Source: Schizochytrium sp. TIO01 (taxonomy: Eukaryota; Protista; Bigyra: Labyrinthulomycetes). Taken from it: 64,000 nt of DNA. The translations under genes and the position numbers were made by a program. The stretch is taken from assembly GCA_004764695.1 (NCBI GenBank), contig SMSO01000034.1, positions 62,001 through 126,000 on the forward strand, in the 5' to 3' direction. This document shows, piece by piece, positions 1 through 13,220 of this stretch. Within the stretch, counting starts at the first letter, position 1, and every line of letters begins with the position of its first letter. Under the pieces are notes generated by a model. That model made no database searches. It was not told the origin of the DNA and was given only the letters and a program-made list of their open reading frames with translations.

Positions 1-3000
1 CCCTGCCACAATTACACGGTTATCATTCGTCCAACCCAAACTCAAGCCGAGACCGTTGGTCATATCCACAGTAACATCAAACTGGTTATTTGGTAACTCG
101 TGGTAAGCCAAAGGCTTGAGCTTGCGGAAACGCATGTGGTAGGGAATTGGCTGGCCATCCTCGCCATACATTTCCTCGTGGTCACGTTGGGGCGGTCGGA
201 AGATGTCCGGAATCGGGTCATTTGCTGGCTCGCGCAACTCACGCAGGCGTGCAATGGAAACATTCGCCTCCACATGCTCGTCATCGAGGTACTTCAACTT
301 GTAAGTTTCATTCTTATCGTTGAAGTCAACAACCTGAGCACGCCGCCAGTCCCGAGACTTACTCGCGTCCTCTACGTTGCAAAGAACGACAACTTGGTCG
401 CCCACAGTAAAACTAGATGTACTGTTCACATCTTGCTCATAAAGACCAGGGGGGCGCTTGATACGTTCTACACCCACGCCGTCCTCGTCATTATTTGAAT
501 CCTTGAAGCATACAGAATAGGAGTCCGATGAAGTAGAAACCTTTGTAATACGAGCAGCGATCCAAACTTTGGCAGAGGCGCTGCTGTCGCCGTCGGAAGA
601 AGACGCACCGGTGTTACCACCGGCAACACTGGCTTGACAAGCTTCGATGGTCTGACCAATGACAAATGCAAGACGATGCACCTGGGCAAACGGGATATTG
701 GCAATCTTCTCAGCAGTATCTTCATGGACCAAGGAACACATTGAGCGACCAATATCAACAGAGGACACTATGCCACGCACGACATCTTTCTCAGGTTCCT
801 TGACCTCCACCAATTCACCAACCATCGGTACAAAGAGACGCACGTTCTCACGATTCATTGGCACGGTAGCAGCAGCAGCTTGCTCTGGGTTTTGCTGATG
901 TTGGTCAGGGAACATTTTCTCAACGCTGTTACCAATTGGATCGAACAGCACGTCATATCGCTCAGCCGGAATATCACGAGAGCTAATGACAGCACGCAAA
1001 AAGCGATTTTCTTCCGGGTGCAGTGCCTCAACTACTGTACCAGGCTCTAATGTCATGAGTGGAGAGCGGACCAGTCCGCCAGCCACAAAGGTCTCCGGAG
1101 CAAGGCTGGCATCCTCATACTGTAGATCATATGAGTCATTCGGGTTAACCCTGGAAACCACAGCACCGTGCCAAGTACGACCAGCGCCGTACATTGCCTC
1201 AACGCGTTCTCCAGCTGCAAAATCAGAGCGTGCAAAGCGCAGCGCACCGAGGGCAACGACTTGCTCGCGCTGATCTAACGGAACATTGTCCAAGTGCACA
1301 GAGTACAGACCATCCTTGTGGTTGCTGACAATTGTGCCCTTGTGCCAAGCTTCTTCAGCGCCAGACAGAGCAAAATCACCCTGGGCCTCAATACGATCAC
1401 CAACATTAAACTCCTGCTTAGCACCTTCCGCAGGATTGTCAATGATTATAGCTTTGGCCGGGACAGCGGCTTCCAGGTCGGGGTCAGCCTTGACGACAGG
1501 CTGTTTTTGTTGATTGCGTCGGCGCATAACCAGTAACGCAGCAGCAATAAGAACTACTGCAACAATAGCAACAACAATACCGACAATCATACCTACACTT
1601 GAGCTTTTTCCATCGCCGCCAGAGGTAGAATCAGGAGGAATTATTGCTGCGCTTAAACAGGTTGCGTTGTCCATACTTACAGATCCACTAGCCAAGCTTA
1701 CATTCTTATCCGCGACAAGAACCACAGAATAAACATTGTATGCATTATCTGCTGAGCAAATAGCGGATGTAGAATTTCCATACGATTTGCTGGGCGTGGT
1801 TTGCACAACAGCACCGGTGGTAGTGTTTGTAAGAATGCAAATAAAACTAGACAGATCAAGGAGTTCTAAGGAAGACCCACTTAGCTCGACGTCAGTATAT
1901 GCATCGCTGTTCGAACATTGAGCATAGCTGTAGGGAGACTGTAGGCAGGAAGCCTTATTCTGCGCTACCTTCACCTGAACCGTGTGAGACGAAATCAATG
2001 TGACACCATCCAGCTCAACACTGATGGTCTCTTCCAGCTGAGCCCGTGTCATAGAACTACTTAATGAACACACAATTTCGCTTTCTGAGTCTGTGTCTTC
2101 AAATGACACGGCATTACTGCCGAGGCACTCCGTGCCCGAGAAAGATCCAGACAAACTCAAATATGCACTCAAGGATGTGCCAGTTACGGATGCACTTACT
2201 GCGCTTCCTGCACATACTTCGTACGGAGTCGTTACGTCAAGACAAATACGAGCCGCAGTTGGTGCTAATTCAATAGATTTAACTACTTTGGTTGTTACAC
2301 CGTCATCCATTTGAGTGTAGAGAGCAATGCTTGTATAGTTACCCGACGAAGTGTTCTTTGGGTCCCAGCCCGGTGCTTGGCACTCTACTGACGGGCTCGA
2401 ACCTCCATTAAAGAGCGGATCTGCGATCTCAAGGCCACTGGGGCCATCAAATGAGCAGAATACCTGCGTGCTCTGCTTAGCAAGCGTAATTGCTGACCTT
2501 CCACCAAGGACTAACTCAACACTCTCACGCGCACAGTCAGCATCGGAATCAGAAACGCCATTGCCTTGTGAGACATCACCAGAGCACACTTGTGCCTTAT
2601 AGCCACTCTCAAAATCAACAGGGTCACCGACTGCGTCATCTGTAATTAAAAGGACCAGAGTCACCGATGAGTAAGCACCATCATTGAAGGAGCTAAGATT
2701 GAAAGGACTCCAGACCTTGGACTGACAAAGAATAGAATTGTCTGATTGAAGGATGGCCTCAGTCTGTTGCACCCCACCACTTGCGTCCCAATCAGAATCA
2801 ATGGTCCAATTGCACGCCCACTGAGTCAATACAGACACAGTTTCGTTGCTAGAGTCATCGTACTCTTCGGTGGTCTCGTTGTAGAGGGCCAACAAGGCGA
2901 CGACGGTCTGCCCCCCGAATGCTGTAGCAAGGCCATCACCAAGACAGTATGAAGGATCAGAAGAGTCTTGCAAAGCGCGACGGCTTGAATCGTCACTCTG

Positions 3001-5952
3001 AGCGGTTACTTCAATAACATTCGATAGGCATTCACCAGCGCCATTAAGACTATACCCACTCACATTCACAGAGACATACTCCGCAACACTGCCAGCAGGC
3101 CGCTCAAGCAAAAGAGCTGTGACGCGACCGCTGTTAAGAGTCGCAGTAGCAGGAAGTGGGCAAGACACAAAGGTATCCTGAACCGTGCCTTCACTAGTTT
3201 CACCAGTGTCAAACTCACACTCAACAGAACCATTCCCTAGTTCAGAAAGTAAGCTTTCAAGACTCGAACCTCCATCTACAAAAACCTTTGCATCGCGAGA
3301 GCCCATGCAAGCAACATCATCACCAACTGGAGAATCCAGCTCACTAACAGTGGAAGTAAGGCAAGGGGATCCAGTAATAACTTCCAGAGCGAAGCCTTCG
3401 TTACCAATTGTAGAAACATAAGTAGAACTATCGGTTCCAGAGCAGCTATATATAAGGTGCGCTCGGACATCGGAGGTGATGCCATTTCCTTCGCCTAGGA
3501 AGAGTTCATCAGGGATATCACAGAGAATACCTCCGGTGTTTGAATCTGTTCGAGCATCCACGTAGATGGATGACGCGTTTCCAGCAACAGGCAAGCCACC
3601 AGAGAAACGGCACTGGGAATAGCCAGCATTAAGACTTAATGCGGTGCTTCCAGTGAACAGAATAGCTGCACCTAACTCACTGTTGTTCTGTGCCCAGCAT
3701 GCAGACACTTGGCCGCTTTCAACAAAGTCATCACTTGAGGAAGATCGTGCACTCAGTTGTAGACATTGACTCGTGGTATTGCTCAGTTGTCGTGACACTA
3801 CAACAACACCGTTACTAAGAAGCTCGAAACGTTTAAATGTAAGGGCACATTGACCTTCTTCAGTAATGTATTGCGTACTACACTCGAATTGTCCACTACC
3901 CAGATCAGTTTGTGTTCCTGTTACGTAAACAACATTATCCTCCTCATTATCATCAACAAATTGGCAGGTGATCGAGGAATCAGAGCCATCAAAGACGACA
4001 TCAGAGTTGCTTGAGGGCACAAGAGTTACTGAAGCGTCAGCACCGTAGCAAGGCTCCTTCTCTACTTGCACTGAAAAGCATGGTTTGAGGGTGTACGAAA
4101 AATAGTCACTGTTTGCGTTGAGAGACAAGGCACGTTTTTGGCTGGGATTGACCAAGTATAAACCAGCTGAGACATCGCGAATCATTGTACCATCTGCCAT
4201 GGGTTCAAAGAGTTCCGCCGGGTAGGAGCAGGTTACTGTAGAAGCATTGACAGTACTGGGTTGCACCAAGTATGAATATGCTGACCCCTTCACACTATAC
4301 ATTCCAATTAAACACTGGAGGTTAAGGCTACTAGATGATTCAGCCTGTGACTTTGCCCACTCCACAGCTTCACCAGAAAAAGTTGCTGAGGCCTCGTCAT
4401 CCATACGCCAACACGCAGAGATGGCGGCTTTGGAGGCGAGGCATGATGCTGCATCTAAGGAAAGGGCAGATGTAACATTGTAAAGGTCCGAGTATGTAAG
4501 CGAGGTCGCATCCGTACCAGGGATATCATCACCAGAACTCAAACTAATTTCAACTTGGATATTGGACACCATCGGGGGGGGTGCGACCTGGACACTTGAA
4601 ATGGCTGCAGACGTGAGGGTTACCGATGAAGTGTCGATACCTGATGCGAGAAACTGCGTTATTGACTCATCCGACAAAGTGCATAAGAAGGAATCCTCAG
4701 AGTCTGACAACGTTGCTGCCACGGTCCGTGTGTAAGAGTAGCCATCGTTTTCAAATTCAATGATGCAATTCACGTCAAAGGAAGATGTGCTGTTTATAAT
4801 AGCGTCAATTGTTGCATTTGTAAGTTCATAGCTGATGTCATCACCAATGCAGCGCTCGGCTTCCACAGGTGTAGCAGTGATGCACGAAGGGCGAGAGAGC
4901 TGAAAAGTCGAGGTGCCCACCAGACGACGGATTGTCGGCTCAACGTTGATCAGCTGTACGGTGATCGTCTCATATGTGCCTGGGGAACTGTAAAACGAGA
5001 TTGGTGTCTCGCATAAGTAGCCTCCAGATATTGCTGTTGGATCCACATCTGGGTACGTGTAACTTGGGTTTCCAGAGAGTGTAAACGAGCAAATCAAATT
5101 ATCCATCTCAGATACAGATGACCCAGTGACTTGAATGGAAGGACGTTCGCCAGCACAGACGCCCCTTGAGGAATCAGGCTTCACAAGTGCTATACTAAAA
5201 TCACCGTAAATAAACGCTGTGAGAGAGTTGATCGTATTGTTCAATGCGTTGACGCTGTCGACAGGGAAAATCAGGTTCTCATCGCCTGTGATCTCTGTAA
5301 CCTCCTCAATCTGTCTCTCCTTCTTCTTTGCAGTAAACCCATCAGAAAGAACAATGGCAAAAATTTGCGTATTGTTTTCCGCATTAATCTCATCAGCAAT
5401 AGCTTCTGAGCGACGCTTGGAGTCTGTATCTTGGTTGGCGTTGCTATTTAGAAAACCATCGGTAACATAGAGAACACTAGATGTCCGTGTTGGGGGGGCA
5501 AGCGCCTCGGCTTCCTCTATCCAGTGCAATGTCTGATTGAGCGCAGTCTCGGCACATGTTTGGCCAGTAGGCTTTATTTTGTAAAGCTTTTGGAAAGCTT
5601 TATCGATGAGCGTTTTGTTTCCTGTAGGCTCAAGGATAACGTTGGGGTCAGAGTCTTCATTCATACAACGAAATAGAGTGATTCCGATGCGAATGCCATT
5701 ATTTTCCTGATCTTCATAGTATGAACCGACTAGCTTCGCCATGGCGGTCGCGGTATCTTCACAAAAGTTGGCCAGCAGTTGCATGCATGTCAGACCGTCT
5801 GAATTTTTTTTACAGGTATTGTCGTTATCATCAATACTGCCAGATGTATCAACAACAAAGTAAAAGTCTTGCGCTTCATTGACCGCTAGTGCTGGTTGGA
5901 GCTGGGCACTCAAGGTGAATACAGTCACCAAAAGTAGGAGAAAGAATCGCAT
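1..5952 (-). CDS. Large type-I transmembrane protein (3'-partial, >=1984 aa): signal peptide, VWA domain, Cys-containing Ig/IPT-like repeats, TM helix, tandem Tudor/Agenet-like repeats, start of a PDZ domain
   Basis: Manual minus-strand translation from ATG at 5952 gives MRFFLLLLVTVFTLSAQLQPALA (signal peptide), then DFYFVVDTSGSI (MIDAS DxSxS), KPTGQT and VLYVTDG. TM segment VGMIVGIVVAIVAVVLIAAALLVM-RRR lies at ~1596-1516. The cytoplasmic part has FxxGDxVE...W...Y-type repeats and ends MTNGLGLSLGWTNDNRVIVAG at base 1. The same frame held at every spot checked. The ORF track lists no stop-terminated ORF in this frame, consistent with one open frame running off the window. Confidence 0.9.
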   Translation of the reverse strand, partial: MRFFLLLLVTVFTLSAQLQPALAVNEAQDFYFVVDTSGSIDDNDNTCKKNSDGLTCMQLLANFCEDTATAMAKLVGSYYEDQENNGIRIGITLFRCMNEDSDPNVILEPTGNKTLIDKAFQKLYKIKPTGQTCAETALNQTLHWIEEAEALAPPTRTSSVLYVTDGFLNSNANQDTDSKRRSEAIADEINAENNTQIFAIVLSDGFTAKKKERQIEEVTEITGDENLIFPVDSVNALNNTINSLTAFIYGDFSIALVKPDSSRGVCAGERPSIQVTGSSVSEMDNLICSFTLSGNPSYTYPDVDPTAISGGYLCETPISFYSSPGTYETITVQLINVEPTIRRLVGTSTFQLSRPSCITATPVEAERCIGDDISYELTNATIDAIINSTSSFDVNCIIEFENDGYSYTRTVAATLSDSEDSFLCTLSDESITQFLASGIDTSSVTLTSAAISSVQVAPPPMVSNIQVEISLSSGDDIPGTDATSLTYSDLYNVTSALSLDAASCLASKAAISACWRMDDEASATFSGEAVEWAKSQAESSSSLNLQCLIGMYSVKGSAYSYLVQPSTVNASTVTCSYPAELFEPMADGTMIRDVSAGLYLVNPSQKRALSLNANSDYFSYTLKPCFSVQVEKEPCYGADASVTLVPSSNSDVVFDGSDSSITCQFVDDNEEDNVVYVTGTQTDLGSGQFECSTQYITEEGQCALTFKRFELLSNGVVVVSRQLSNTTSQCLQLSARSSSSDDFVESGQVSACWAQNNSELGAAILFTGSTALSLNAGYSQCRFSGGLPVAGNASSIYVDARTDSNTGGILCDIPDELFLGEGNGITSDVRAHLIYSCSGTDSSTYVSTIGNEGFALEVITGSPCLTSTVSELDSPVGDDVACMGSRDAKVFVDGGSSLESLLSELGNGSVECEFDTGETSEGTVQDTFVSCPLPATATLNSGRVTALLLERPAGSVAEYVSVNVSGYSLNGAGECLSNVIEVTAQSDDSSRRALQDSSDPSYCLGDGLATAFGGQTVVALLALYNETTEEYDDSSNETVSVLTQWACNWTIDSDWDASGGVQQTEAILQSDNSILCQSKVWSPFNLSSFNDGAYSSVTLVLLITDDAVGDPVDFESGYKAQVCSGDVSQGNGVSDSDADCARESVELVLGGRSAITLAKQSTQVFCSFDGPSGLEIADPLFNGGSSPSVECQAPGWDPKNTSSGNYTSIALYTQMDDGVTTKVVKSIELAPTAARICLDVTTPYEVCAGSAVSASVTGTSLSAYLSLSGSFSGTECLGSNAVSFEDTDSESEIVCSLSSSMTRAQLEETISVELDGVTLISSHTVQVKVAQNKASCLQSPYSYAQCSNSDAYTDVELSGSSLELLDLSSFICILTNTTTGAVVQTTPSKSYGNSTSAICSADNAYNVYSVVLVADKNVSLASGSVSMDNATCLSAAIIPPDSTSGGDGKSSSVGMIVGIVVAIVAVVLIAAALLVMRRRNQQKQPVVKADPDLEAAVPAKAIIIDNPAEGAKQEFNVGDRIEAQGDFALSGAEEAWHKGTIVSNHKDGLYSVHLDNVPLDQREQVVALGALRFARSDFAAGERVEAMYGAGRTWHGAVVSRVNPNDSYDLQYEDASLAPETFVAGGLVRSPLMTLEPGTVVEALHPEENRFLRAVISSRDIPAERYDVLFDPIGNSVEKMFPDQHQQNPEQAAAATVPMNRENVRLFVPMVGELVEVKEPEKDVVRGIVSSVDIGRSMCSLVHEDTAEKIANIPFAQVHRLAFVIGQTIEACQASVAGGNTGASSSDGDSSASAKVWIAARITKVSTSSDSYSVCFKDSNNDEDGVGVERIKRPPGLYEQDVNSTSSFTVGDQVVVLCNVEDASKSRDWRRAQVVDFNDKNETYKLKYLDDEHVEANVSIARLRELREPANDPIPDIFRPPQRDHEEMYGEDGQPIPYHMRFRKLKPLAYHELPNNQFDVTVDMTNGLGLSLGWTNDNRVIVAG

Positions 5953-7940
5953 GTGTTGGCTCAGTCTTGGCAATCCTCCTTGTGAATGCTGTGTTATTGA
6001 TGTTGACAGCCTTGCCTGGTCCAGAGATATGTGGGTGCCTTGCGCTCCTCCTCTGATCATTGCTGCTAATTTACTGGTTGCATATTTCTGTTGAGAGGCT
6101 GTACGCAAGCCTAGGCTTGAAATTTGATTTTGTAAAGCTGCCATTTTCTGCGAATCAGCTGGGTACTTACACGGGACGACTTTATGTGCAATGTCTTCTT
6201 GGCTGGCCTCTTGTTTAAGCCACCGATGCACGAGTCTTGCCCCAGCGCTCTAAAGCGCACTTGCAATTTTAGTTCTGCTTACTGGTACTGCTGACTTTAA
6301 AAAACCCAAAAGACCAAGAATGTGAAACTCTTCCTTCTCCTAGTAGCACTCTCTTCTATCACTGTGCTAGCTTAGTGCTACCTACTATTTTCGGTAGAAG
6401 TACGGTATTTTCAAAACAAACAGAGGAACTAACTCTATTCTACGTATGTCTCTATTGTTGTAGAAATCTCCCCTTGAGATTGACACCAAGCCTTTTAGAG
6501 CGAACCCAGCACCTGGGGAGTGAGTTTAGATGCTGCACTAAGGACCACACACTAGGTATCAGGTTTGTTGAGGGTCGCCGAAGTGATTTCTTTCTTTCTG
6601 CTGTAGCTATTACTTTCCCTCCTCCTTTGCCAGGTAGTATATTGTTTGACTTCTTTATATTGTGTCGTCAATCAGCCAGTCGATCAGTCAATCGGTCAAT
6701 CAGACACAGACCCCCCTTGCACGGCTGCTTTTGCTGTTGGTTATGATTGGCTCTCGTCTTGCGCACAACACGGACGAGCCAGTCTCTTCGCACACCAGCT
6801 GCACCACCGGCGATCAATCGGGCTCTTCACCTCTTCACCGCGCCCTGGAGCAGTCGCTTCTTGGATTGTACACGAAGTTGCTGCACTTTAGTTGTTCTTG
6901 GTTTGCAACTCTGTTCGCGCTGTCCTCTCAACGACACTCCCTTTTCCTTTCTTGAGCCTTTTCTTAGAAATAAAAACAATCTTGAAAAAAGAAAAGAAAA
7001 GGAAAAAACTCAAAAGAGAAAAGAGAAAAGCTTATGTTCGGGAAGAGACTTTCGAAATTGATTTGACGTCCTTGCAAGCCTGTAGATACCTACTGGGTAG
7101 AGAGAAAGATACCTGCCTGCCTCCTTCCCGTTCCTTGCAGACTGACCAGCGGCCAGAAGCCAAAGCGAATTCCAAAAGGCGGGAGCAATTGAATTGTTAT
7201 AAAAAAACAAAAAAACAGCACCAATAACAGGAAAACCAAATTGACTCCCTTGTAGCCACCTTGGTACGCACCTATTGCGACAAATAGGAGTACCTAAGGA
7301 ATGACAAAGAAACACCTCAGAAAAGAACGCCTCTCTACACTAGAAAAAAGAAAGGAAAAAAGAGACAAGCTCCAAATAGAAATGTGCGATTTGGTTACCG
7401 GTCTGTGGCAACGAATGAAAAACTCGTCTAGTAGAGCGAGCGCTCAAGGTTCCCGCTTGATGTCCCAGCCTGCCTGCTTAAAATGACTTGCCAGGACCGC
7501 GTCTCGATTCGCCTACTCGCTGCGAGCAAATGTTTGAGAGTTTGGGCTCGCAAAAGCCTTCGAATGGATGCACTTCATATTCGAAAGAAAAGGGAACGAT
7601 CCGAACTGAAAATAAAAACACCTTTTTTCCTCTCTCTTTCTATTCCCCTCTGAAATGAAAAGTTTTTATTCAAAATCAAATTCCATTCTCGTTCTCCTCA
7701 ACGCCGCCGATCAGAGGCACCGATCTCGCGGGATCGGGCGATCCGTCGATTGCCGCGGCTGCGCCTGCTGCAGGCCGCGAGAGAGATCTCGGCCGGGCTG
7801 TCGGGCGTGCTGATCGGTGCTCCGCAGCCGCTTCGAAGGCTGATCGGCGTCAGTCAATGGAGAGGAGGTTTACGACTTGCTGACGGAATTCGAATTTTGA
7901 TTGAATGTTTCTCTTTCCTTTCCAACACTGGAATATGATC

Positions 7941-8040
7941 AATTTTGAATTTCGAATATTGAATTTCGAATATTGAATTTTGAATTTCGAATTTCGAATA
8001 TTGAATTTCGAATATTGAATTTTGAATTTCGAATTTTCGA
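7941..8040. repeat. Heptamer array GAATTTC/GAATATT/GAATTTT containing a 42-bp higher-order unit repeated twice
   Basis: From 7947 the units read A-B-A-B-C-A-A-B-A-B-C-A-C (A=GAATTTC, B=GAATATT, C=GAATTTT). The array sits inside a GC-rich island (~7700-8400). Confidence 0.9.
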
Positions 8041-11000
8041 GGATTCCATCCCGAGACCCTCGCTCGAACTCAGGCCTCGCGACGCCTCCCTGCGCCGCCC
8101 AAGCCGCCCACGCGCTGCCGTGGCTTGCCTAGGCCCGCCTGCACACACTCACGTCAGCCGAGGGATCGATTGGTTCTTCGAGCCCAACGGAGCATTTGAG
8201 AACAGACCGCGCGTTATGGGGACCCTGCACCGATATTGGCCTTCGTCCCGGCTCGACTCCTTTGGGGCGGGTTGAATTAGGATGCCAGGCGGCCAGGGGA
8301 GAGCCCGAGGAGGAGGCGCGGCCCTGCCTGCGCTGCCGCCCTCCGCGCCTGCGCTAGGGGCGCCAGCTCTGCGATGAGCGGCACTGCGCTGGCGGAAGCG
8401 ATTTTGACCAAGATTTTGGCGAAGATTTTCAGAGTGACAACATGATCTTCGTGTGTTCCTCTCGCGTTCAAAGTAGAGAACGCAGGCCTAAGGGTGAATT
8501 GTGGCCTCTTAGCATCGTTCTTTTGAGTCAAAGTTTTATTTTCTTTTCAAACTAGTCATTCTCAGAGCTCCACCGGCAGAAAAGAAAACTTTTGAATCGA
8601 GAAACCTTTTTCCCAGAAATGAAAATTCTGTCTTCGAGTGATTTTTATTTTTGAAAACTTTCGAGTTGCATTTGTGTATTGCACTGTATGCAAATACTAT
8701 GTCCATATTAGCTAAAACTGTAGGACCGAAGGTCAGCAATGTTCTAGGAGGGTGGAAAAGGACCTCTCTGTGAGGGCATACTTTTACAGTGGACATGAGA
8801 GGGGAGAGGCGAAGGTTTGAAAGACCCGAGGACGACTGGTACTGATTAGAGTAAGAGACCTTTCATCAAATGAAGGCGAGAGTGGATAACACTCAGGAGA
8901 TCGAGTCGATCAAAAAGTCCAACTTGTCAATTCAATTCACGTCGATCAATTGCAAAGCTAGAGGACAGACCCTCATGATTGAGACACATCTCTCTCAATA
9001 TTTTTACCGCCGACAAATGAAGCCAATTTATTGGTTTTCGCTTGGCTAAGTTAGACTCCGATGTGATCTTCACCAGTATTTGCACGTCATTCATGGAGCT
9101 CCCAATCAACTTTTGAAAAGAAAAAGAAAAAAAAAAATAGATAAAAGTTTTGTTCATTCACTATATAAAGTTTTAAAAAGGTTTTTTGAAACTATATTAA
9201 ACAAATCTTAATCAGTTTCTTGTCTCCCAAGCCTTTGTGATGATGAAAACAGGAAGCGAGGCACTAATCAATCTGTGTAATGTCAGTGATGGTCATGAAT
9301 GATTGATACATTTTAAATAGTGAATGAAACATGGTAGATTATATATCAGGACGTGTCCTTCCTTATACTACTCCTTTTGCTCAGGAAGAATAGAGAAAGA
9401 AAGAATTAGTATTCAAAGTTTTCTGGCAAATGTTTTCGTGATACTTTTCATTTCTTCTGTATCCGTCTCCTTCGGTCACCTACCATAATGAATGACACCT
9501 GGGTGTCTGCTGCTCATGCTGCAGTTGTGGTGTGATGCAATAAATTCTATAACAAGTTTGATTCAGGTATAACTTGAACAAGCGCGTTCCAATACTGAAG
9601 TAACTTCCAAGCAAAAATGTTTGGTGTCCATCGCGGACTTTCTAGGCACGCACAGCAGTCATGTGAGATTCGTCCGCCTCAACAGCTATGCTTGGCTTGA
9701 AACCTGGAGATTGTTTATGCTTGCCCGCACGGTGCAATTTGCTTCACACCAAAGTTCCCCTGTAAAGGTTGCATATGAAACCTTGGCCTTTAATGATCCC
9801 CAATCTGTGAGACGAATTACGCTGCCCAAGTTGGCCAGTTCAAGGATACTGCGACGAGGCTTTCTATTGAGTAAAAAACAGAATGAGAACATCTCCAACA
9901 GTGAAGGCAGCGAAATGTGCAGCATATGATAGGTAGAGAGACATAGTGTGGCAATACCTAACACATCGAGTAAGATGAAGTCAATTAGGCCTAAATCACT
10001 ACTAATATTTTCCAGCACGTTGAGCATTTATTGAAGTGCACTACAAAGTGACTTTAAATTGGTCCGCATACAATTCATGATAAAGGTGAGAAATCATGGA
10101 GGCTTTCCAGCTGATGGTTTACTTGATTAAATTATCTCATACGTATACTCAGCATTTATAATGTCTTTGTCTGCGGTTTAGTTAGCAAAATTTGACCAGT
10201 ATCGTTCCTATGCCCACCACTTTTACTACTAATGCTGGCATCAATTTCATCACCAATCGCTCAGAATCGCCCATCCCTTCTTCGCATCTCAAAAACTTCA
10301 TCACCACCATTATCGACACTTATCACAAGCTGAGGTGATGCATACCAAAAACCACACCATAAATAATCTTCACACATTTCAATTGACGAAGGATCGACTG
10401 CAAGAAGGAGTATACTAGGAAGCCTCGATAGGGGTGCGAGAATGCAAATGATTAAGATAGCCGCACAGGTTGGTCAAAATCTTTCATCGGGCGCTCTCGA
10501 TTTCACGAGACCCTCCACATCTCCACAGCACTATCTCCTCCCAGTTGGTGGTTAATTGAAAATTCTGCAGAGTGATTGGCTCATCCTCCTGAGAGAACCC
10601 CACGCACGGTAGGCAGGCAGCTCAAGTTTGTAAATAACAAAATAAAAACGAAAGTTTTTTCCTTCACCTTTTTTTTTTTTTTTTCATAGTAGCCCGTTGG
10701 GGGGACCGCTTTCAAAAAAAAGAAAGAAAGAAAGAAAAAGGAATGCCCCAAGATGGATCAGCTGCCGCTGTACTTTGTCTCGTATGAACAGCGTCAGTCG
10801 CGTGTCTTTGCGCATGCTCTATTAGCTATAGTACTACTGGATGGTAACAGTAAATTGCTGAGCTCCAAGGACGCACATGTTACACCTACTTCCAAGGCCA
10901 CAGTTGTGTCCCATTCAGCTAGGTAATATCAACTTGAAGACAGGCGTAAACTCCCCCTTTGCAGCTGTTTGAGCAGTCAGTCAGATGCCCTCCTGGCTTG

Positions 11001-11277
11001 CTAGACATGGTCGCCACCAGGCTGTTGAAAACTATGTTGTATGTTGAGCGGGAAACTTGATTGCTTGATGCTCAGGTATGTGCTGCTAAAATGCCAGCAC
11101 CACTGGCGGAGATGTTTTTTATTTATTTTATTTATTTATATGTTTTTACCTTGTCCTCGTCTTTGCGTACAATTTGCGCTGACCTTTGTCACCTTCGTGA
11201 CAGTTTTCCCCTAGATCGCTTTAACATTCTACGTGAGGCCTTATTCAGCTTTCGAACCTAGGTGATACACGTATAGT

Positions 11278-11374
11278 CAGAATCTATGGACTTGCATGCC
11301 GTGTGAAAGATCATAGTCGAGATAATCAGAGTCTATGAACTTTGTACGCCCATGTGAAAGATCATAGTCGAGAT
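11278..11374. repeat. Imperfect ~50-bp tandem duplication
   Basis: cagaatctatggacttgcatgccgtgtgaaagatcatagtcgagat is followed by cagagtctatgaactttgtacgcccatgtgaaagatcatagtcgagat. The core tgtgaaagatcatagtcgagat is identical in both. Confidence 0.85.
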
Positions 11375-13220
11375 CTCTGTCATGAAATACTCACTTCAAG
11401 ATTAAGTCAATTGTCAAACGAGGCACCCATCTCTCCATCTTTTACCATTCGGAAGTCCATCATAGTAAGATACAGCGACAGCATTTGCCAAAACCTAACA
11501 TGAGCTTGCTTGGCATTGTCGCAGGATTTATAGTATTCATGGCAAATAACAGGATCATGAACATGGAACTGCCATTTGGCCGGATAGGGCGGACGAGAAG
11601 ACCCCCCCGCACGTTTATGATCTTTCGTTGTAGCTTGTGATTCCGCAAGCTGCTGACGATATTTAACTTCTTGTGGAATCTAATGTGCAAGCCTTTTCAG
11701 CTGGAACTAATTGGCACCTTCTGCATCCTTTACAAAACTCTTATCAAGTATCGTTATTTTATATTCAAGCTGCATCGACTTTCAAATTTGTAAAGATTCT
11801 GTGAATCGAAAGTTAACCCACTCAACACCATCATCTGTCCCGTATTTAGCTCTTGAGAGAGGTTGGGGAACGGTGTTCTGAGCATGTTACTGATATCGCG
11901 CCGATAATGATTAGGCAATAATTATTTTATAATATGTCATAATTTAAAAAATAAAATAAACAAACGTTTTGTGGTGTTAAAAATTAATCACTGCTAATAG
12001 ACAAGGTTAGTTACTACCAAGAAGCAAACCAAAAAAACAAGAAGAATGACCCTCCCTACTGGCACCATGACTGATGCTGCTCGCAAAGTAGTCATATTGT
12101 ACGCAGTACAAAGCGTCAGCGCTGACGAGAAGGAGCCCGTGTTATCAGCTTGCAGGCGTTTTCTGAAGTAGGTCAGGAGGCCACTGGCTCGGTATAAAAT
12201 TGTATTCTTTTAATTTTGGTGATTTGAATTCCTAGCTCTACAAAATAATACTACCACAAGAACTCGACAGCTATAAGCTTGTTTGCAGCAAATCCCGATT
12301 CCTCTGGTTCTACTGTAATTCCCAGCCTGCCTTGAATTAAGGAAAGCAAGCATGGCATAATCCATGTTTCCCCTGACCGCTAGCGCTGTCTTGTTTTAAC
12401 TGACATAATAGAGCGATGAGCGTGCGCCGCAGACTTTCCTTAAAGTACGGTAAAACGGGGCTCCATTGTCATCATAACAAACAACCACAAGAGAAATGAC
12501 ACCCTCTTTGAATCTCCCTTAACTAATTGATTGTAACACCAATTGCCCCACCAGGAGGTCTCTGAGAGTCGCTTGGCCCGATAAAACATTCAATCTATAG
12601 GCTGCTTATATGTTTTCTGTAGCAGTAAGGTACTACTACTACTGGTAGTAACCTAAAGACACAGACTCCTACTGGTTGATTGGACTAGGGAAGAACAAGA
12701 AGGTGGTTATCGGTATTGCAGGAGACATAAACTACTACACAGGCCAACTATTCGGGCATTTGCTTGAACGCTGTCTCTAGGAAACGGTTCTTTCTCAATC
12801 AGTCTGCGTAGAAGCATGGTCATAGCATTATTAGCAAACCAGCAGCAATCCTCAGTGACAATATGATGGAAAATAGAGATTTTCCATGCCAAAGGAATGA
12901 ATTCTGCGGCTCTCAAACACAAAAAATATGTCATGTAACGAAGAACTGAAGGCCAATATCATTGACTCTGTCGCAACGAAAAAAAAAAAGTGATGTGAAG
13001 ATATGCACCGTATCGTAAGGACGACATATACCCCTTTGAACCTCTGGAAACCGTTCTTTGATGTCTAAGAACTAGGCTACAATCCCACCTCAACAGCGTG
13101 ACAAGTGTACAGCACATCTCTGACATGAAGAATCCTGATGATCAGGTTTTACAAAGCAGTGCTTTCGGATCATCTAGAAAAGGATATCACTGTCCAATAC
13201 CAGGGGCAAATGTATCAAAC

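Follow-up and report, generated by a model that had tools for sequence, protein, structure and literature searches.

A probable surface adhesion receptor of Schizochytrium sp. TIO01 with an ANTXR-like head and a cytoplasmic tail of Tudor-fold barrels and a PDZ domain

The subject of this analysis was a gene at the left end of a 64,000-nucleotide stretch of Schizochytrium sp. TIO01 DNA (GenBank assembly GCA_004764695.1, contig SMSO01000034.1, positions 62,001 to 126,000), which is called the window throughout and corresponds to C33:62001-126000 of the 64-Mb, 37-contig genome. The gene encoded a protein with a VWA head carrying a metal ion-dependent adhesion site (MIDAS), a long Cys-bearing stalk, one transmembrane (TM) helix, six Tudor-fold barrels and a C-terminal PDZ domain. 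With moderate confidence, the protein is taken to be a surface adhesion receptor in which a long stalk carries an ANTXR-like, MIDAS-dependent head and the tail would itself serve as a scaffold. The same order of parts was seen in at least ten proteins of 1,400-2,250 amino acids (aa), from different sources, and the three of them with a taxon label were labyrinthulomycetes.

Reading frame, transcript and start codon

An earlier note on this DNA had described an open minus-strand frame of at least 1984 codons whose stop lay outside the window. Translation from window position 5952 to position 1 gave 1984 codons and zero stops (coding sequence for aa 1-1984, window 1..5952; this and all features below are on the minus strand), and the left flank added 80 codons and then a stop at C33:61758-61760, so that the last 80 codons and the stop occupied C33:61758-62000, left of the window. 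The complete frame was located at L003:1761-7952 (minus strand), contained no introns and totalled 2064 aa from the Met at 5952.

The 90%-identity cluster of the receptor included a protein that bears the label of MMETSP, a collection of transcriptomes. It was identical at 2057 of 2064 positions (99.7%), colinear and gap-free from the signal peptide to the C-terminus. Contigs from four runs of four studies, guessed to be RNA, were compared over window 400-6399, which single contigs of 7239 and 10075 nt covered without gap, indel or joint. The contigs of all four runs ended 350-385 nt to the left of position 400, about 110-145 nt beyond the stop, and those of three runs ended on the other side at window ~6882-6893. 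The receptor is probably made from one unspliced transcript of ~7.2 kb; the contigs support this without being conclusive, because it is a guess that the runs are RNA. The frame was without in-frame stops, and with the evidence for one unspliced transcript this agreed with the assumption of the earlier note that ectodomain and endodomain are not split into two genes. Listed coding differences between strains numbered 39, of which 29 were synonymous and 10 non-synonymous, and this excess of synonymous changes indicates purifying selection across the whole frame. In one run (X10), one contig extended on to about window 9707.

The 5' leader of the mRNA (window 5953..6893) was delimited by the contig ends of the three runs at ~6882-6893, and it held no AUG in 6145-6893. 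This 749-nt interval contained zero ATG on the minus strand against ~13 expected (Poisson P ~3e-6), and ATG-free windows of the same length made up 20 of the 2532 sampled on both strands. The interval has the look of a scanned leader. Two AUGs lay upstream of Met 5952 in the same frame, at 6144 and 6060, with an out-of-frame upstream open reading frame (ORF) of 5 codons at 6083 between them. The first AUG of the mRNA was that at 6144, 64 codons upstream of Met 5952 and in good context (aaaAUGg); the AUG at 5952 was in weak context. Since the first in-frame AUG in good context is at 6144, the precursor may be of 2128 aa, with 64 hydrophilic residues ahead of the signal sequence. In the alignment, the models of orthologues began right at the signal peptide, and so did the one from Mucochytrium that was derived from a transcript; public models of the receptor itself had three starts, giving 2064, 2100 and 2128 aa. 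The earlier note had placed the start of the protein at Met 5952; the signal peptide was indeed found there, and the first AUG of the mRNA was not.

No ORF of >=150 aa was present on either strand over the ~7 kb upstream of the gene (window 5953-13220). A GC-rich patch (60%) was observed at window 8001-8500.

Topology and ectodomain

Hydropathy analysis resolved just two hydrophobic segments in the receptor, aa 3-24 and aa 1448-1480. Because there were two such segments and most of the Cys (47 of 51) and most of the N-glycosylation sequons (NxS/T; 23 of 27) lay between them, in the ectodomain, the predicted pattern is that of a type I membrane protein. The signal peptide was assigned to aa 1-23 (MRFFLLLLVTVFTLSAQLQPALA, ending in ALA directly before VN; window 5884..5952) by hydropathy and by the similarly hydrophobic N-terminus of the orthologue models. 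The TM helix was assigned to V1453-M1476, with an RRR stop-transfer sequence at 1477-1479 (window 1516..1596), by hydropathy and orthologue alignment. Both the signal peptide and the single helix with its RRR had been noticed before and were located as described. A GxxxG motif in the helix (G1454, G1458) was conserved, I1456 and G1458 were invariant in eight orthologues, and the TM region gave weak Pfam matches to the TM models of ErbB1 and EphA2; on the strength of the conserved motif and these matches, the GxxxG is possibly a dimerisation motif.

The VWA domain occupied aa 24-250 (window 5203..5883) and was supported by invariance, by sequence matches in PDB and by an AlphaFold2 (AF2) model with a fold search. 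An apparently complete MIDAS had been noted in it, and all five residues were found: D35, S37 and S39 in DTSGS (aa 35-39), T132 in PTGQT and D165 in TDG, each invariant in the eight orthologues. The PDB sequence search with aa 24-260 returned 13 matches, all 13 of them to ANTXR2/CMG2, and the alignment to ANTXR2 paired DTSGS with DKSGS, GQT with GET and TDG with TDG. A VWA match in Pfam was obtained in one orthologue (E 4e-17). The AF2 model of aa 24-640 (predicted local distance difference test, pLDDT, 85; predicted template-modelling score, pTM, 0.68) consisted of a VWA fold followed by three beta-sandwiches. In Foldseek, the top match of this model was the VWA+Ig ectodomain of ANTXR2 (9rt4_C1, E 2e-16, 341 columns), and the modelled VWA domain compared with the isolated VWA domains of CMG2/TEM8 gave a target-normalised TM-score of 0.82-0.85 at a root-mean-square deviation (rmsd) of ~3 A; further matches of the head were to integrin aX and aM chains and to Gram-positive pilus tip adhesins. 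Four of the 10 non-synonymous differences between strains fell in codons 45 and 49 (window 5806-5820), within the Cys-rich loop that follows the first MIDAS motif, and this cluster may represent variation on the ligand-binding face.

The first beta-sandwich (aa 251-351; window 4900..5202) took the position of the ANTXR Ig-like domain in the Foldseek match to ANTXR2 VWA+Ig, and Pfam Anth_Ig was matched in one orthologue (E 7e-6). The stalk proper (aa 352-1445; window 1618..4899) was divided, by Cys spacing and unit profiles, into about nine more divergent beta-sandwich units of ~100 aa each, typically with 4 Cys. From aa 266 to aa 1432, Cys recurred at intervals of ~100 aa, in keeping with the ~1200-aa Cys-repeat stalk of the earlier note; the unit profiles matched one another at E 1e-3 to 1e-6, and a weak Pfam match to TIG_plexin was also obtained. 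The stalk would thus amount to about ten divergent Cys-bearing beta-sandwich domains, with the Ig-like domain included. A basic motif, SSRRALQ (aa 989-995; window 2968..2988), was located by orthologue alignment in an inter-domain linker at mid-stalk, where the pattern [RS]RRxL[QA] was present in 6 of 8 orthologues. This motif may be a candidate site for a convertase of the kexin/furin type, cleavage at which would split the ectodomain.

Like the receptor, the animal matrix receptors ANTXR1/TEM8 and ANTXR2/CMG2 are type I proteins: a signal peptide comes first, the VWA domain has a MIDAS of the DxSxS-T-D form and adjoins an Ig-like domain, which in the receptor is a predicted one, and there is one TM helix. 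The receptor differed from them in ~nine extra stalk domains between the Ig domain and the membrane and in a Cys-rich VWA insertion after the first MIDAS loop, and sequence identity was ~20%. A Pfam scan of the receptor tail at E up to 1 gave Tudor-type and TM-type models only and no ANTXR cytoplasmic domain. Strict membership of the ANTXR family was therefore ruled out, by the absent cytoplasmic domain and the ~nine extra stalk domains. The apicomplexan gliding adhesins TRAP/MIC2 and integrin alpha I-domains likewise provide MIDAS VWA heads on single-pass proteins, which couple outside ligands to the cytoskeleton. Unlike them, the receptor was without a TSR, a short acidic Trp tail, a beta-propeller and a beta-subunit partner domain, and coupling, if any, would proceed through folded tail domains instead of the short adaptor-recruiting motif of TRAP and integrins. 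Membership of TRAP/MIC2 was rejected on the lack of a Pfam TSP1 match in the receptor and on its 580-aa folded tail, which ends in -DSDSEE and has no Trp; membership of the integrins was rejected as well.

Instead of a substrate adhesin, the receptor could be an intracellular or self-directed one, for the sorting or assembly of secreted wall-scale or matrix components, or for cell-cell or gamete recognition. Matrix components are endocytosed by ANTXR2, to which the head is most closely related; a conserved juxtamembrane D-L-E motif of the receptor resembles di-acidic ER-export (endoplasmic reticulum) signals; and the conserved RR motif at mid-stalk suggests processing in the secretory pathway. 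A stalk of ~1,200 aa with a complete MIDAS is, however, typical of surface adhesins, and the same tail occurs on a receptor with TSP1, an adhesin-type module, although neither point is decisive. This alternative is considered unlikely while keeping a real share of the probability.

Cytoplasmic Tudor-fold barrels and PDZ domain

The earlier note had described ~500 aa of Tudor-like repeats behind the TM helix. Their Tudor/Agenet identity was upheld by Pfam and by fold, and the length was revised to six units in ~400 aa. Pfam matched the tail with Agenet (E 2e-12, 47.8 bits against a cut-off of 27), SGF29_Tudor (E 1e-9, 38.7 against 23.8) and TUDOR (E 1e-5, 26 against 23), and Agenet was matched in 8 of 8 family members. 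The AF2 model of the tail (mean pLDDT 68, with 80-90 in the barrels) showed six five-stranded barrels, at aa 1514-1576, 1577-1632, 1634-1709, 1710-1763, 1764-1831 and 1847-1908, and then a PDZ-like unit. In a repeat alignment, the barrels had in common the motif G-x-x-VEA ... W ... Y-x-V ... V...R. The best conserved pair was formed by barrels 1 and 2 (aa 1514-1632; window 1057..1413), which had pLDDT of 80-90, matches to Tudor folds and 40-45% identity among orthologues, against 26-31% for barrels 3-6; W1536, W1594 and Y1608 were invariant in them. Barrels 3-6 (aa 1634-1709, 1710-1763, 1764-1831 and 1847-1908; window 229..1053) were assigned from AF2 strands, repeat alignment and fold matches, and barrels 3 and 5 contained loop insertions.

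Fold comparison was needed for the Tudor identity of the barrels, because sequence and profile searches of PDB were blank or marginal: phmmer with the barrel region against PDB gave zero matches, and a six-barrel profile gave only marginal matches to FXR1 and SGF29 (E 5e-3). The first Foldseek match of the whole array was to Agenet domains 1-4 of Arabidopsis AGDP3 (E 1e-8), followed by SPT5 KOW arrays, MBT repeats and the triple Tudor of SETDB1. In VIA-align, barrels 1, 2, 4 and 6 superposed onto Tudor domains at Z ~9 with rmsd of 1.2-2.2 A over 52-61 residues. Barrel 1 resembled the Tudor domains of FMRP and SMN and barrel 2 those of UHRF1, TDRD3 and PHF20 (Z ~9, rmsd 1.5-2.2 A); barrels 4 and 6 resembled those of PHF1, TDRD3 and SMN (rmsd 1.2-2.2 A). 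Barrels 1-2 taken together against the SGF29 tandem Tudor gave a Z of 9.6, but an rmsd of 8.7 A.

Putative cage-type positions, placed by analogy with known Tudor structures, were most complete in barrel 2. W1594 (beta2), Y1608 (beta3) and a residue at the end of beta3 were aromatic in 8 of 8 orthologues, and 4 of the 8 had Tyr, Phe or His at the fourth position, in the beta1-beta2 loop. Barrel 1 retained three aromatic cage-type positions, and barrels 3-6 were degenerate, with both core aromatics absent from barrel 4. A reader function is possible for barrels 1-2. Under an alternative account, methyl-mark signalling would be the point of the tail: at least one barrel, likeliest barrel 2 and perhaps barrel 1, would read methyl-Arg or methyl-Lys on cytoplasmic proteins, and methylation would switch the coupling. 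The superposition on reader Tudors (SMN, TDRD3, SGF29, UHRF1 and PHF1; rmsd 1.2-2.2 A) and the aromatic positions of barrel 2 speak for it. No barrel, however, had a complete and conserved four-residue cage, barrel 4 had lost both core aromatics, and the placing of the cage positions by analogy and the missing or marginal PDB matches weigh on the same side. Methyl-mark reading is regarded as somewhat more doubtful than the sorting or recognition receptor, and in the preferred account, the adhesion receptor with a scaffold tail, the barrels would be protein-docking modules.

Like the receptor, tandem Tudor/Agenet readers (AGDP3, FMRP/FXR1, SGF29, the UHRF1 TTD and 53BP1) have five-stranded barrels with the G-x-x-VEA...W...Y-x-V motif, set next to each other in pairs. 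Those readers are soluble and mostly nuclear binders of chromatin or RNA, whereas the barrels of the receptor were on a cytoplasmic tail and a complete aromatic cage was not conserved in them. Tudor domains tethered to a membrane and facing the cytosol are known in AKAP1 and TDRKH, which, unlike the receptor, are mitochondrial, are anchored by the N-terminus and have no ectodomain.

The PDZ domain began at aa 1958 and ended at aa 2045, outside the window, and its first part (aa 1958-1984, window 1..81) included the GLGL carboxylate-binding loop; it was assigned from PDB sequence and profile matches. G1967, L1968 and G1969 of the loop were invariant in the eight orthologues. A phmmer search of PDB at E up to 10 gave 44 matches, all of them PDZ except two marginal ones (E > 1), and the best was an InaD-like PDZ (E 6e-5, 97 residues). 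A profile built from the receptor family reached E 3.7e-11 against PDB with 130 matches at E up to 0.001, and among the best 60 of these 130, which were the ones listed, all 60 were PDZ domains or PDZ-containing proteins. The GLGL-type PDZ start of the earlier note was in this way substantiated, and the profile and fold searches that it had proposed for the Tudor and PDZ parts both matched. Pfam PDZ_6 and PDZ matched relatives of the receptor, and the ESM Atlas gave just sub-threshold PDZ-like leads (scores <=0.84).

The domain was the most conserved region of the protein (69% mean identity). It was preceded by a lead-in (aa 1909-1957, IFRPPxR...HxRFxKxKPLxYxELPNNQF; window 82..228) of 54% mean identity, which together with the PDZ domain formed the best conserved stretch of the protein and accompanied that domain in other proteins too; R1919, P1920, P1921, R1923, R1941, P1947, L1953, N1956 and F1958 were invariant in this region. 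When homologues were sought that carry the PDZ module in a shorter protein, none turned up, a blank that says little. The first residue of alpha-B was an invariant Phe at the place where class I domains have His; in PDZ domains generally, such a replacement would favour ligands whose residue at position -2 is hydrophobic. The extreme C-terminus of the receptor was not conserved, so that it is unlikely to be a ligand of its own PDZ domain. The PDZ domain was most similar to those of InaD-like proteins and GRIP. Classical receptors combine a PDZ-binding motif with a separate PDZ scaffold (InaD, GRIP, syntenin), whereas the receptor carried a PDZ domain of its own.

Relatives, weight of the evidence and meaning

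A word-indexed search recovered seven full-length relatives of 1894-2253 aa, among them 'Anthrax toxin receptor 2' of Hondaea fermentalgiana and 'VWFA domain-containing protein' of Mucochytrium quahogii. A 'PDZ domain-containing protein' of Aplanochytrium stocchinoi (P0026) also had the layout with a C-terminal PDZ module. Sequences of the family are thus already public under automatic names. The full architecture was single-copy in the TIO01 genome; the genome search with the receptor also matched a locus at C33:1785997.

An exhaustive phmmer search with the tail returned 336 proteins at E up to 1e-3, in two sets. Proteins of the first set ended in the PDZ module and had one TM helix ahead of it; barrels were present in some of them and absent from others, and the ectodomains differed. 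TM helix, barrels and terminal PDZ were combined with a VWA domain in P0039 and with an unrecognised ectodomain in P0020 and P0048; TM helix and terminal PDZ, with no barrels detected, were combined with a VWA domain in P0052 and P0076 and with an unrecognised ectodomain in P0050, P0066 and P0128. A paralogue of 3175 aa (L013:294-9818; C31:651294-660818, minus strand), also intron-free, had an ectodomain with TSP1, the other module of TRAP; its TM helix lay at aa 2667-2689, and it likewise carried Tudor barrels and the terminal PDZ module of the receptor. Read from these sequences, the tail of TM helix, Tudor barrels and PDZ is a reusable cassette placed on different ectodomains.

The second set was mostly without a hydrophobic segment and had 10-32 tandem barrels (P0009, P0011, P0013-P0019, P0031); one protein was labelled as from the oomycete Pythium insidiosum. 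P0018 of this set also had SAM and EF-hand domains, and P0031 had ankyrin repeats. The composition of the set suggests a family of large cytoplasmic poly-Tudor scaffolds. Cytoplasmic Tudor arrays, which are very frequent in the TIO01 genome and also occur widely in other public sequences, are a lineage-wide theme, and the receptor is one instance of it.

Two of the proteins with VWA parts stood out. P0076, with a VWA domain, a TM helix and the PDZ module (47% identity in the module), was labelled Batrachochytrium salamandrivorans (KAH9249623.1); the label is doubtful and could reflect protist contamination of the assembly or a true chytrid homologue. The nearest VWA paralogue in TIO01 (L014:1790-4306; C36:600790-603306) was a protein of 839 aa with a VWA-like N-terminus and a beta-propeller of the PQQ/BamB type.

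The earlier note had not recognised the architecture. The literature search found no paper describing a receptor with VWA, stalk, TM, Tudor and PDZ in this arrangement, and to that extent the impression stood; the sense of uniqueness has to be qualified, given the relatives with the same layout, the shared tail cassette and the common occurrence of Tudor arrays. The long frame could also be an artefact in which chance or the assembly joined an ectodomain gene to a separate Tudor/PDZ gene, and the uncertain RNA nature of the runs could be cited for this. Such a fusion has a negligible probability against the same order of parts in at least ten proteins from different sources, a full-length and gap-free MMETSP-labelled protein, contigs without joints or indels, and purifying selection over the whole frame.

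Several results weigh against the adhesion receptor as proposed. The VWA models of Pfam stayed below their cut-offs on the receptor itself (VWA_2, 25.7 bits against 27; VWA, 19.6 against 23.8), and a Pfam scan restricted to the last 130 aa was without a PDZ match even at E 10. The PDZ part of the AF2 model reached a pLDDT of only 50-70. The signal sequence would lie 64 residues inside the protein if translation begins at the first AUG. That the runs behind the contigs are RNA is a guess, and a contig by itself is no proof of a transcript. A proteome study of Aurantiochytrium zoospores and vegetative cells, directed at ectoplasmic-net candidates, names no such protein in those parts of its text and supplements that were examined.

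With these points taken into account, the surface adhesion receptor is still held to be probable. From the gene, the topology signals, the domain folds and their conservation, all of which were observed, we infer its location at the cell surface and its role in adhesion. Outside the cell, the VWA head would bind a ligand through a metal ion in the MIDAS. The head would be held tens of nanometres from the membrane by the one Ig-like domain and the ~nine further disulfide-stabilised beta-sandwiches. The single TM helix, possibly dimerising through its GxxxG, would lead into the cytoplasmic tail, where the six Tudor-fold barrels would act as docking modules for proteins, with the first two the most constrained. 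The C-terminal PDZ domain would bind a conserved partner, either at the C-terminus of that partner or at a motif within it, and the tail as a whole would tie the receptor to cortical or sorting machinery.

A wider proposal is offered as a speculation that is more probably wrong than right by a long way. The tail would be the receptor end of an undescribed coupling system of labyrinthulomycetes, perhaps of stramenopiles, in which VWA or TSP1 adhesins and ion channels dock through their barrels onto methylated cortical proteins or onto poly-Tudor scaffolds, and methylation would serve as a membrane-proximal code for attachment and the formation of the ectoplasmic net. If true, such a system would be a functional counterpart of integrin-talin or TRAP-GAC that is built from parts of chromatin readers.

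Tudor folds, known mainly as nuclear readers of marks, were found here in series on the tail of a receptor, beside a PDZ domain that belongs to the receptor itself. Should the partners of the barrels prove to be methylated, the reading of methyl marks would extend to cell-surface signalling; otherwise, the tail would be a clear case of reuse of the Tudor fold as a generic docking module. That an ANTXR-like VWA+Ig head occurs in an organism other than an animal is relevant to how the ANTXR family arose. Labyrinthulomycetes use their unique ectoplasmic net to hold on to detritus and host tissue and to digest them. The genus Aurantiochytrium is genetically transformable. The receptor family provides a concrete, conserved and single-copy candidate for the molecule that holds these organisms to their substrate.

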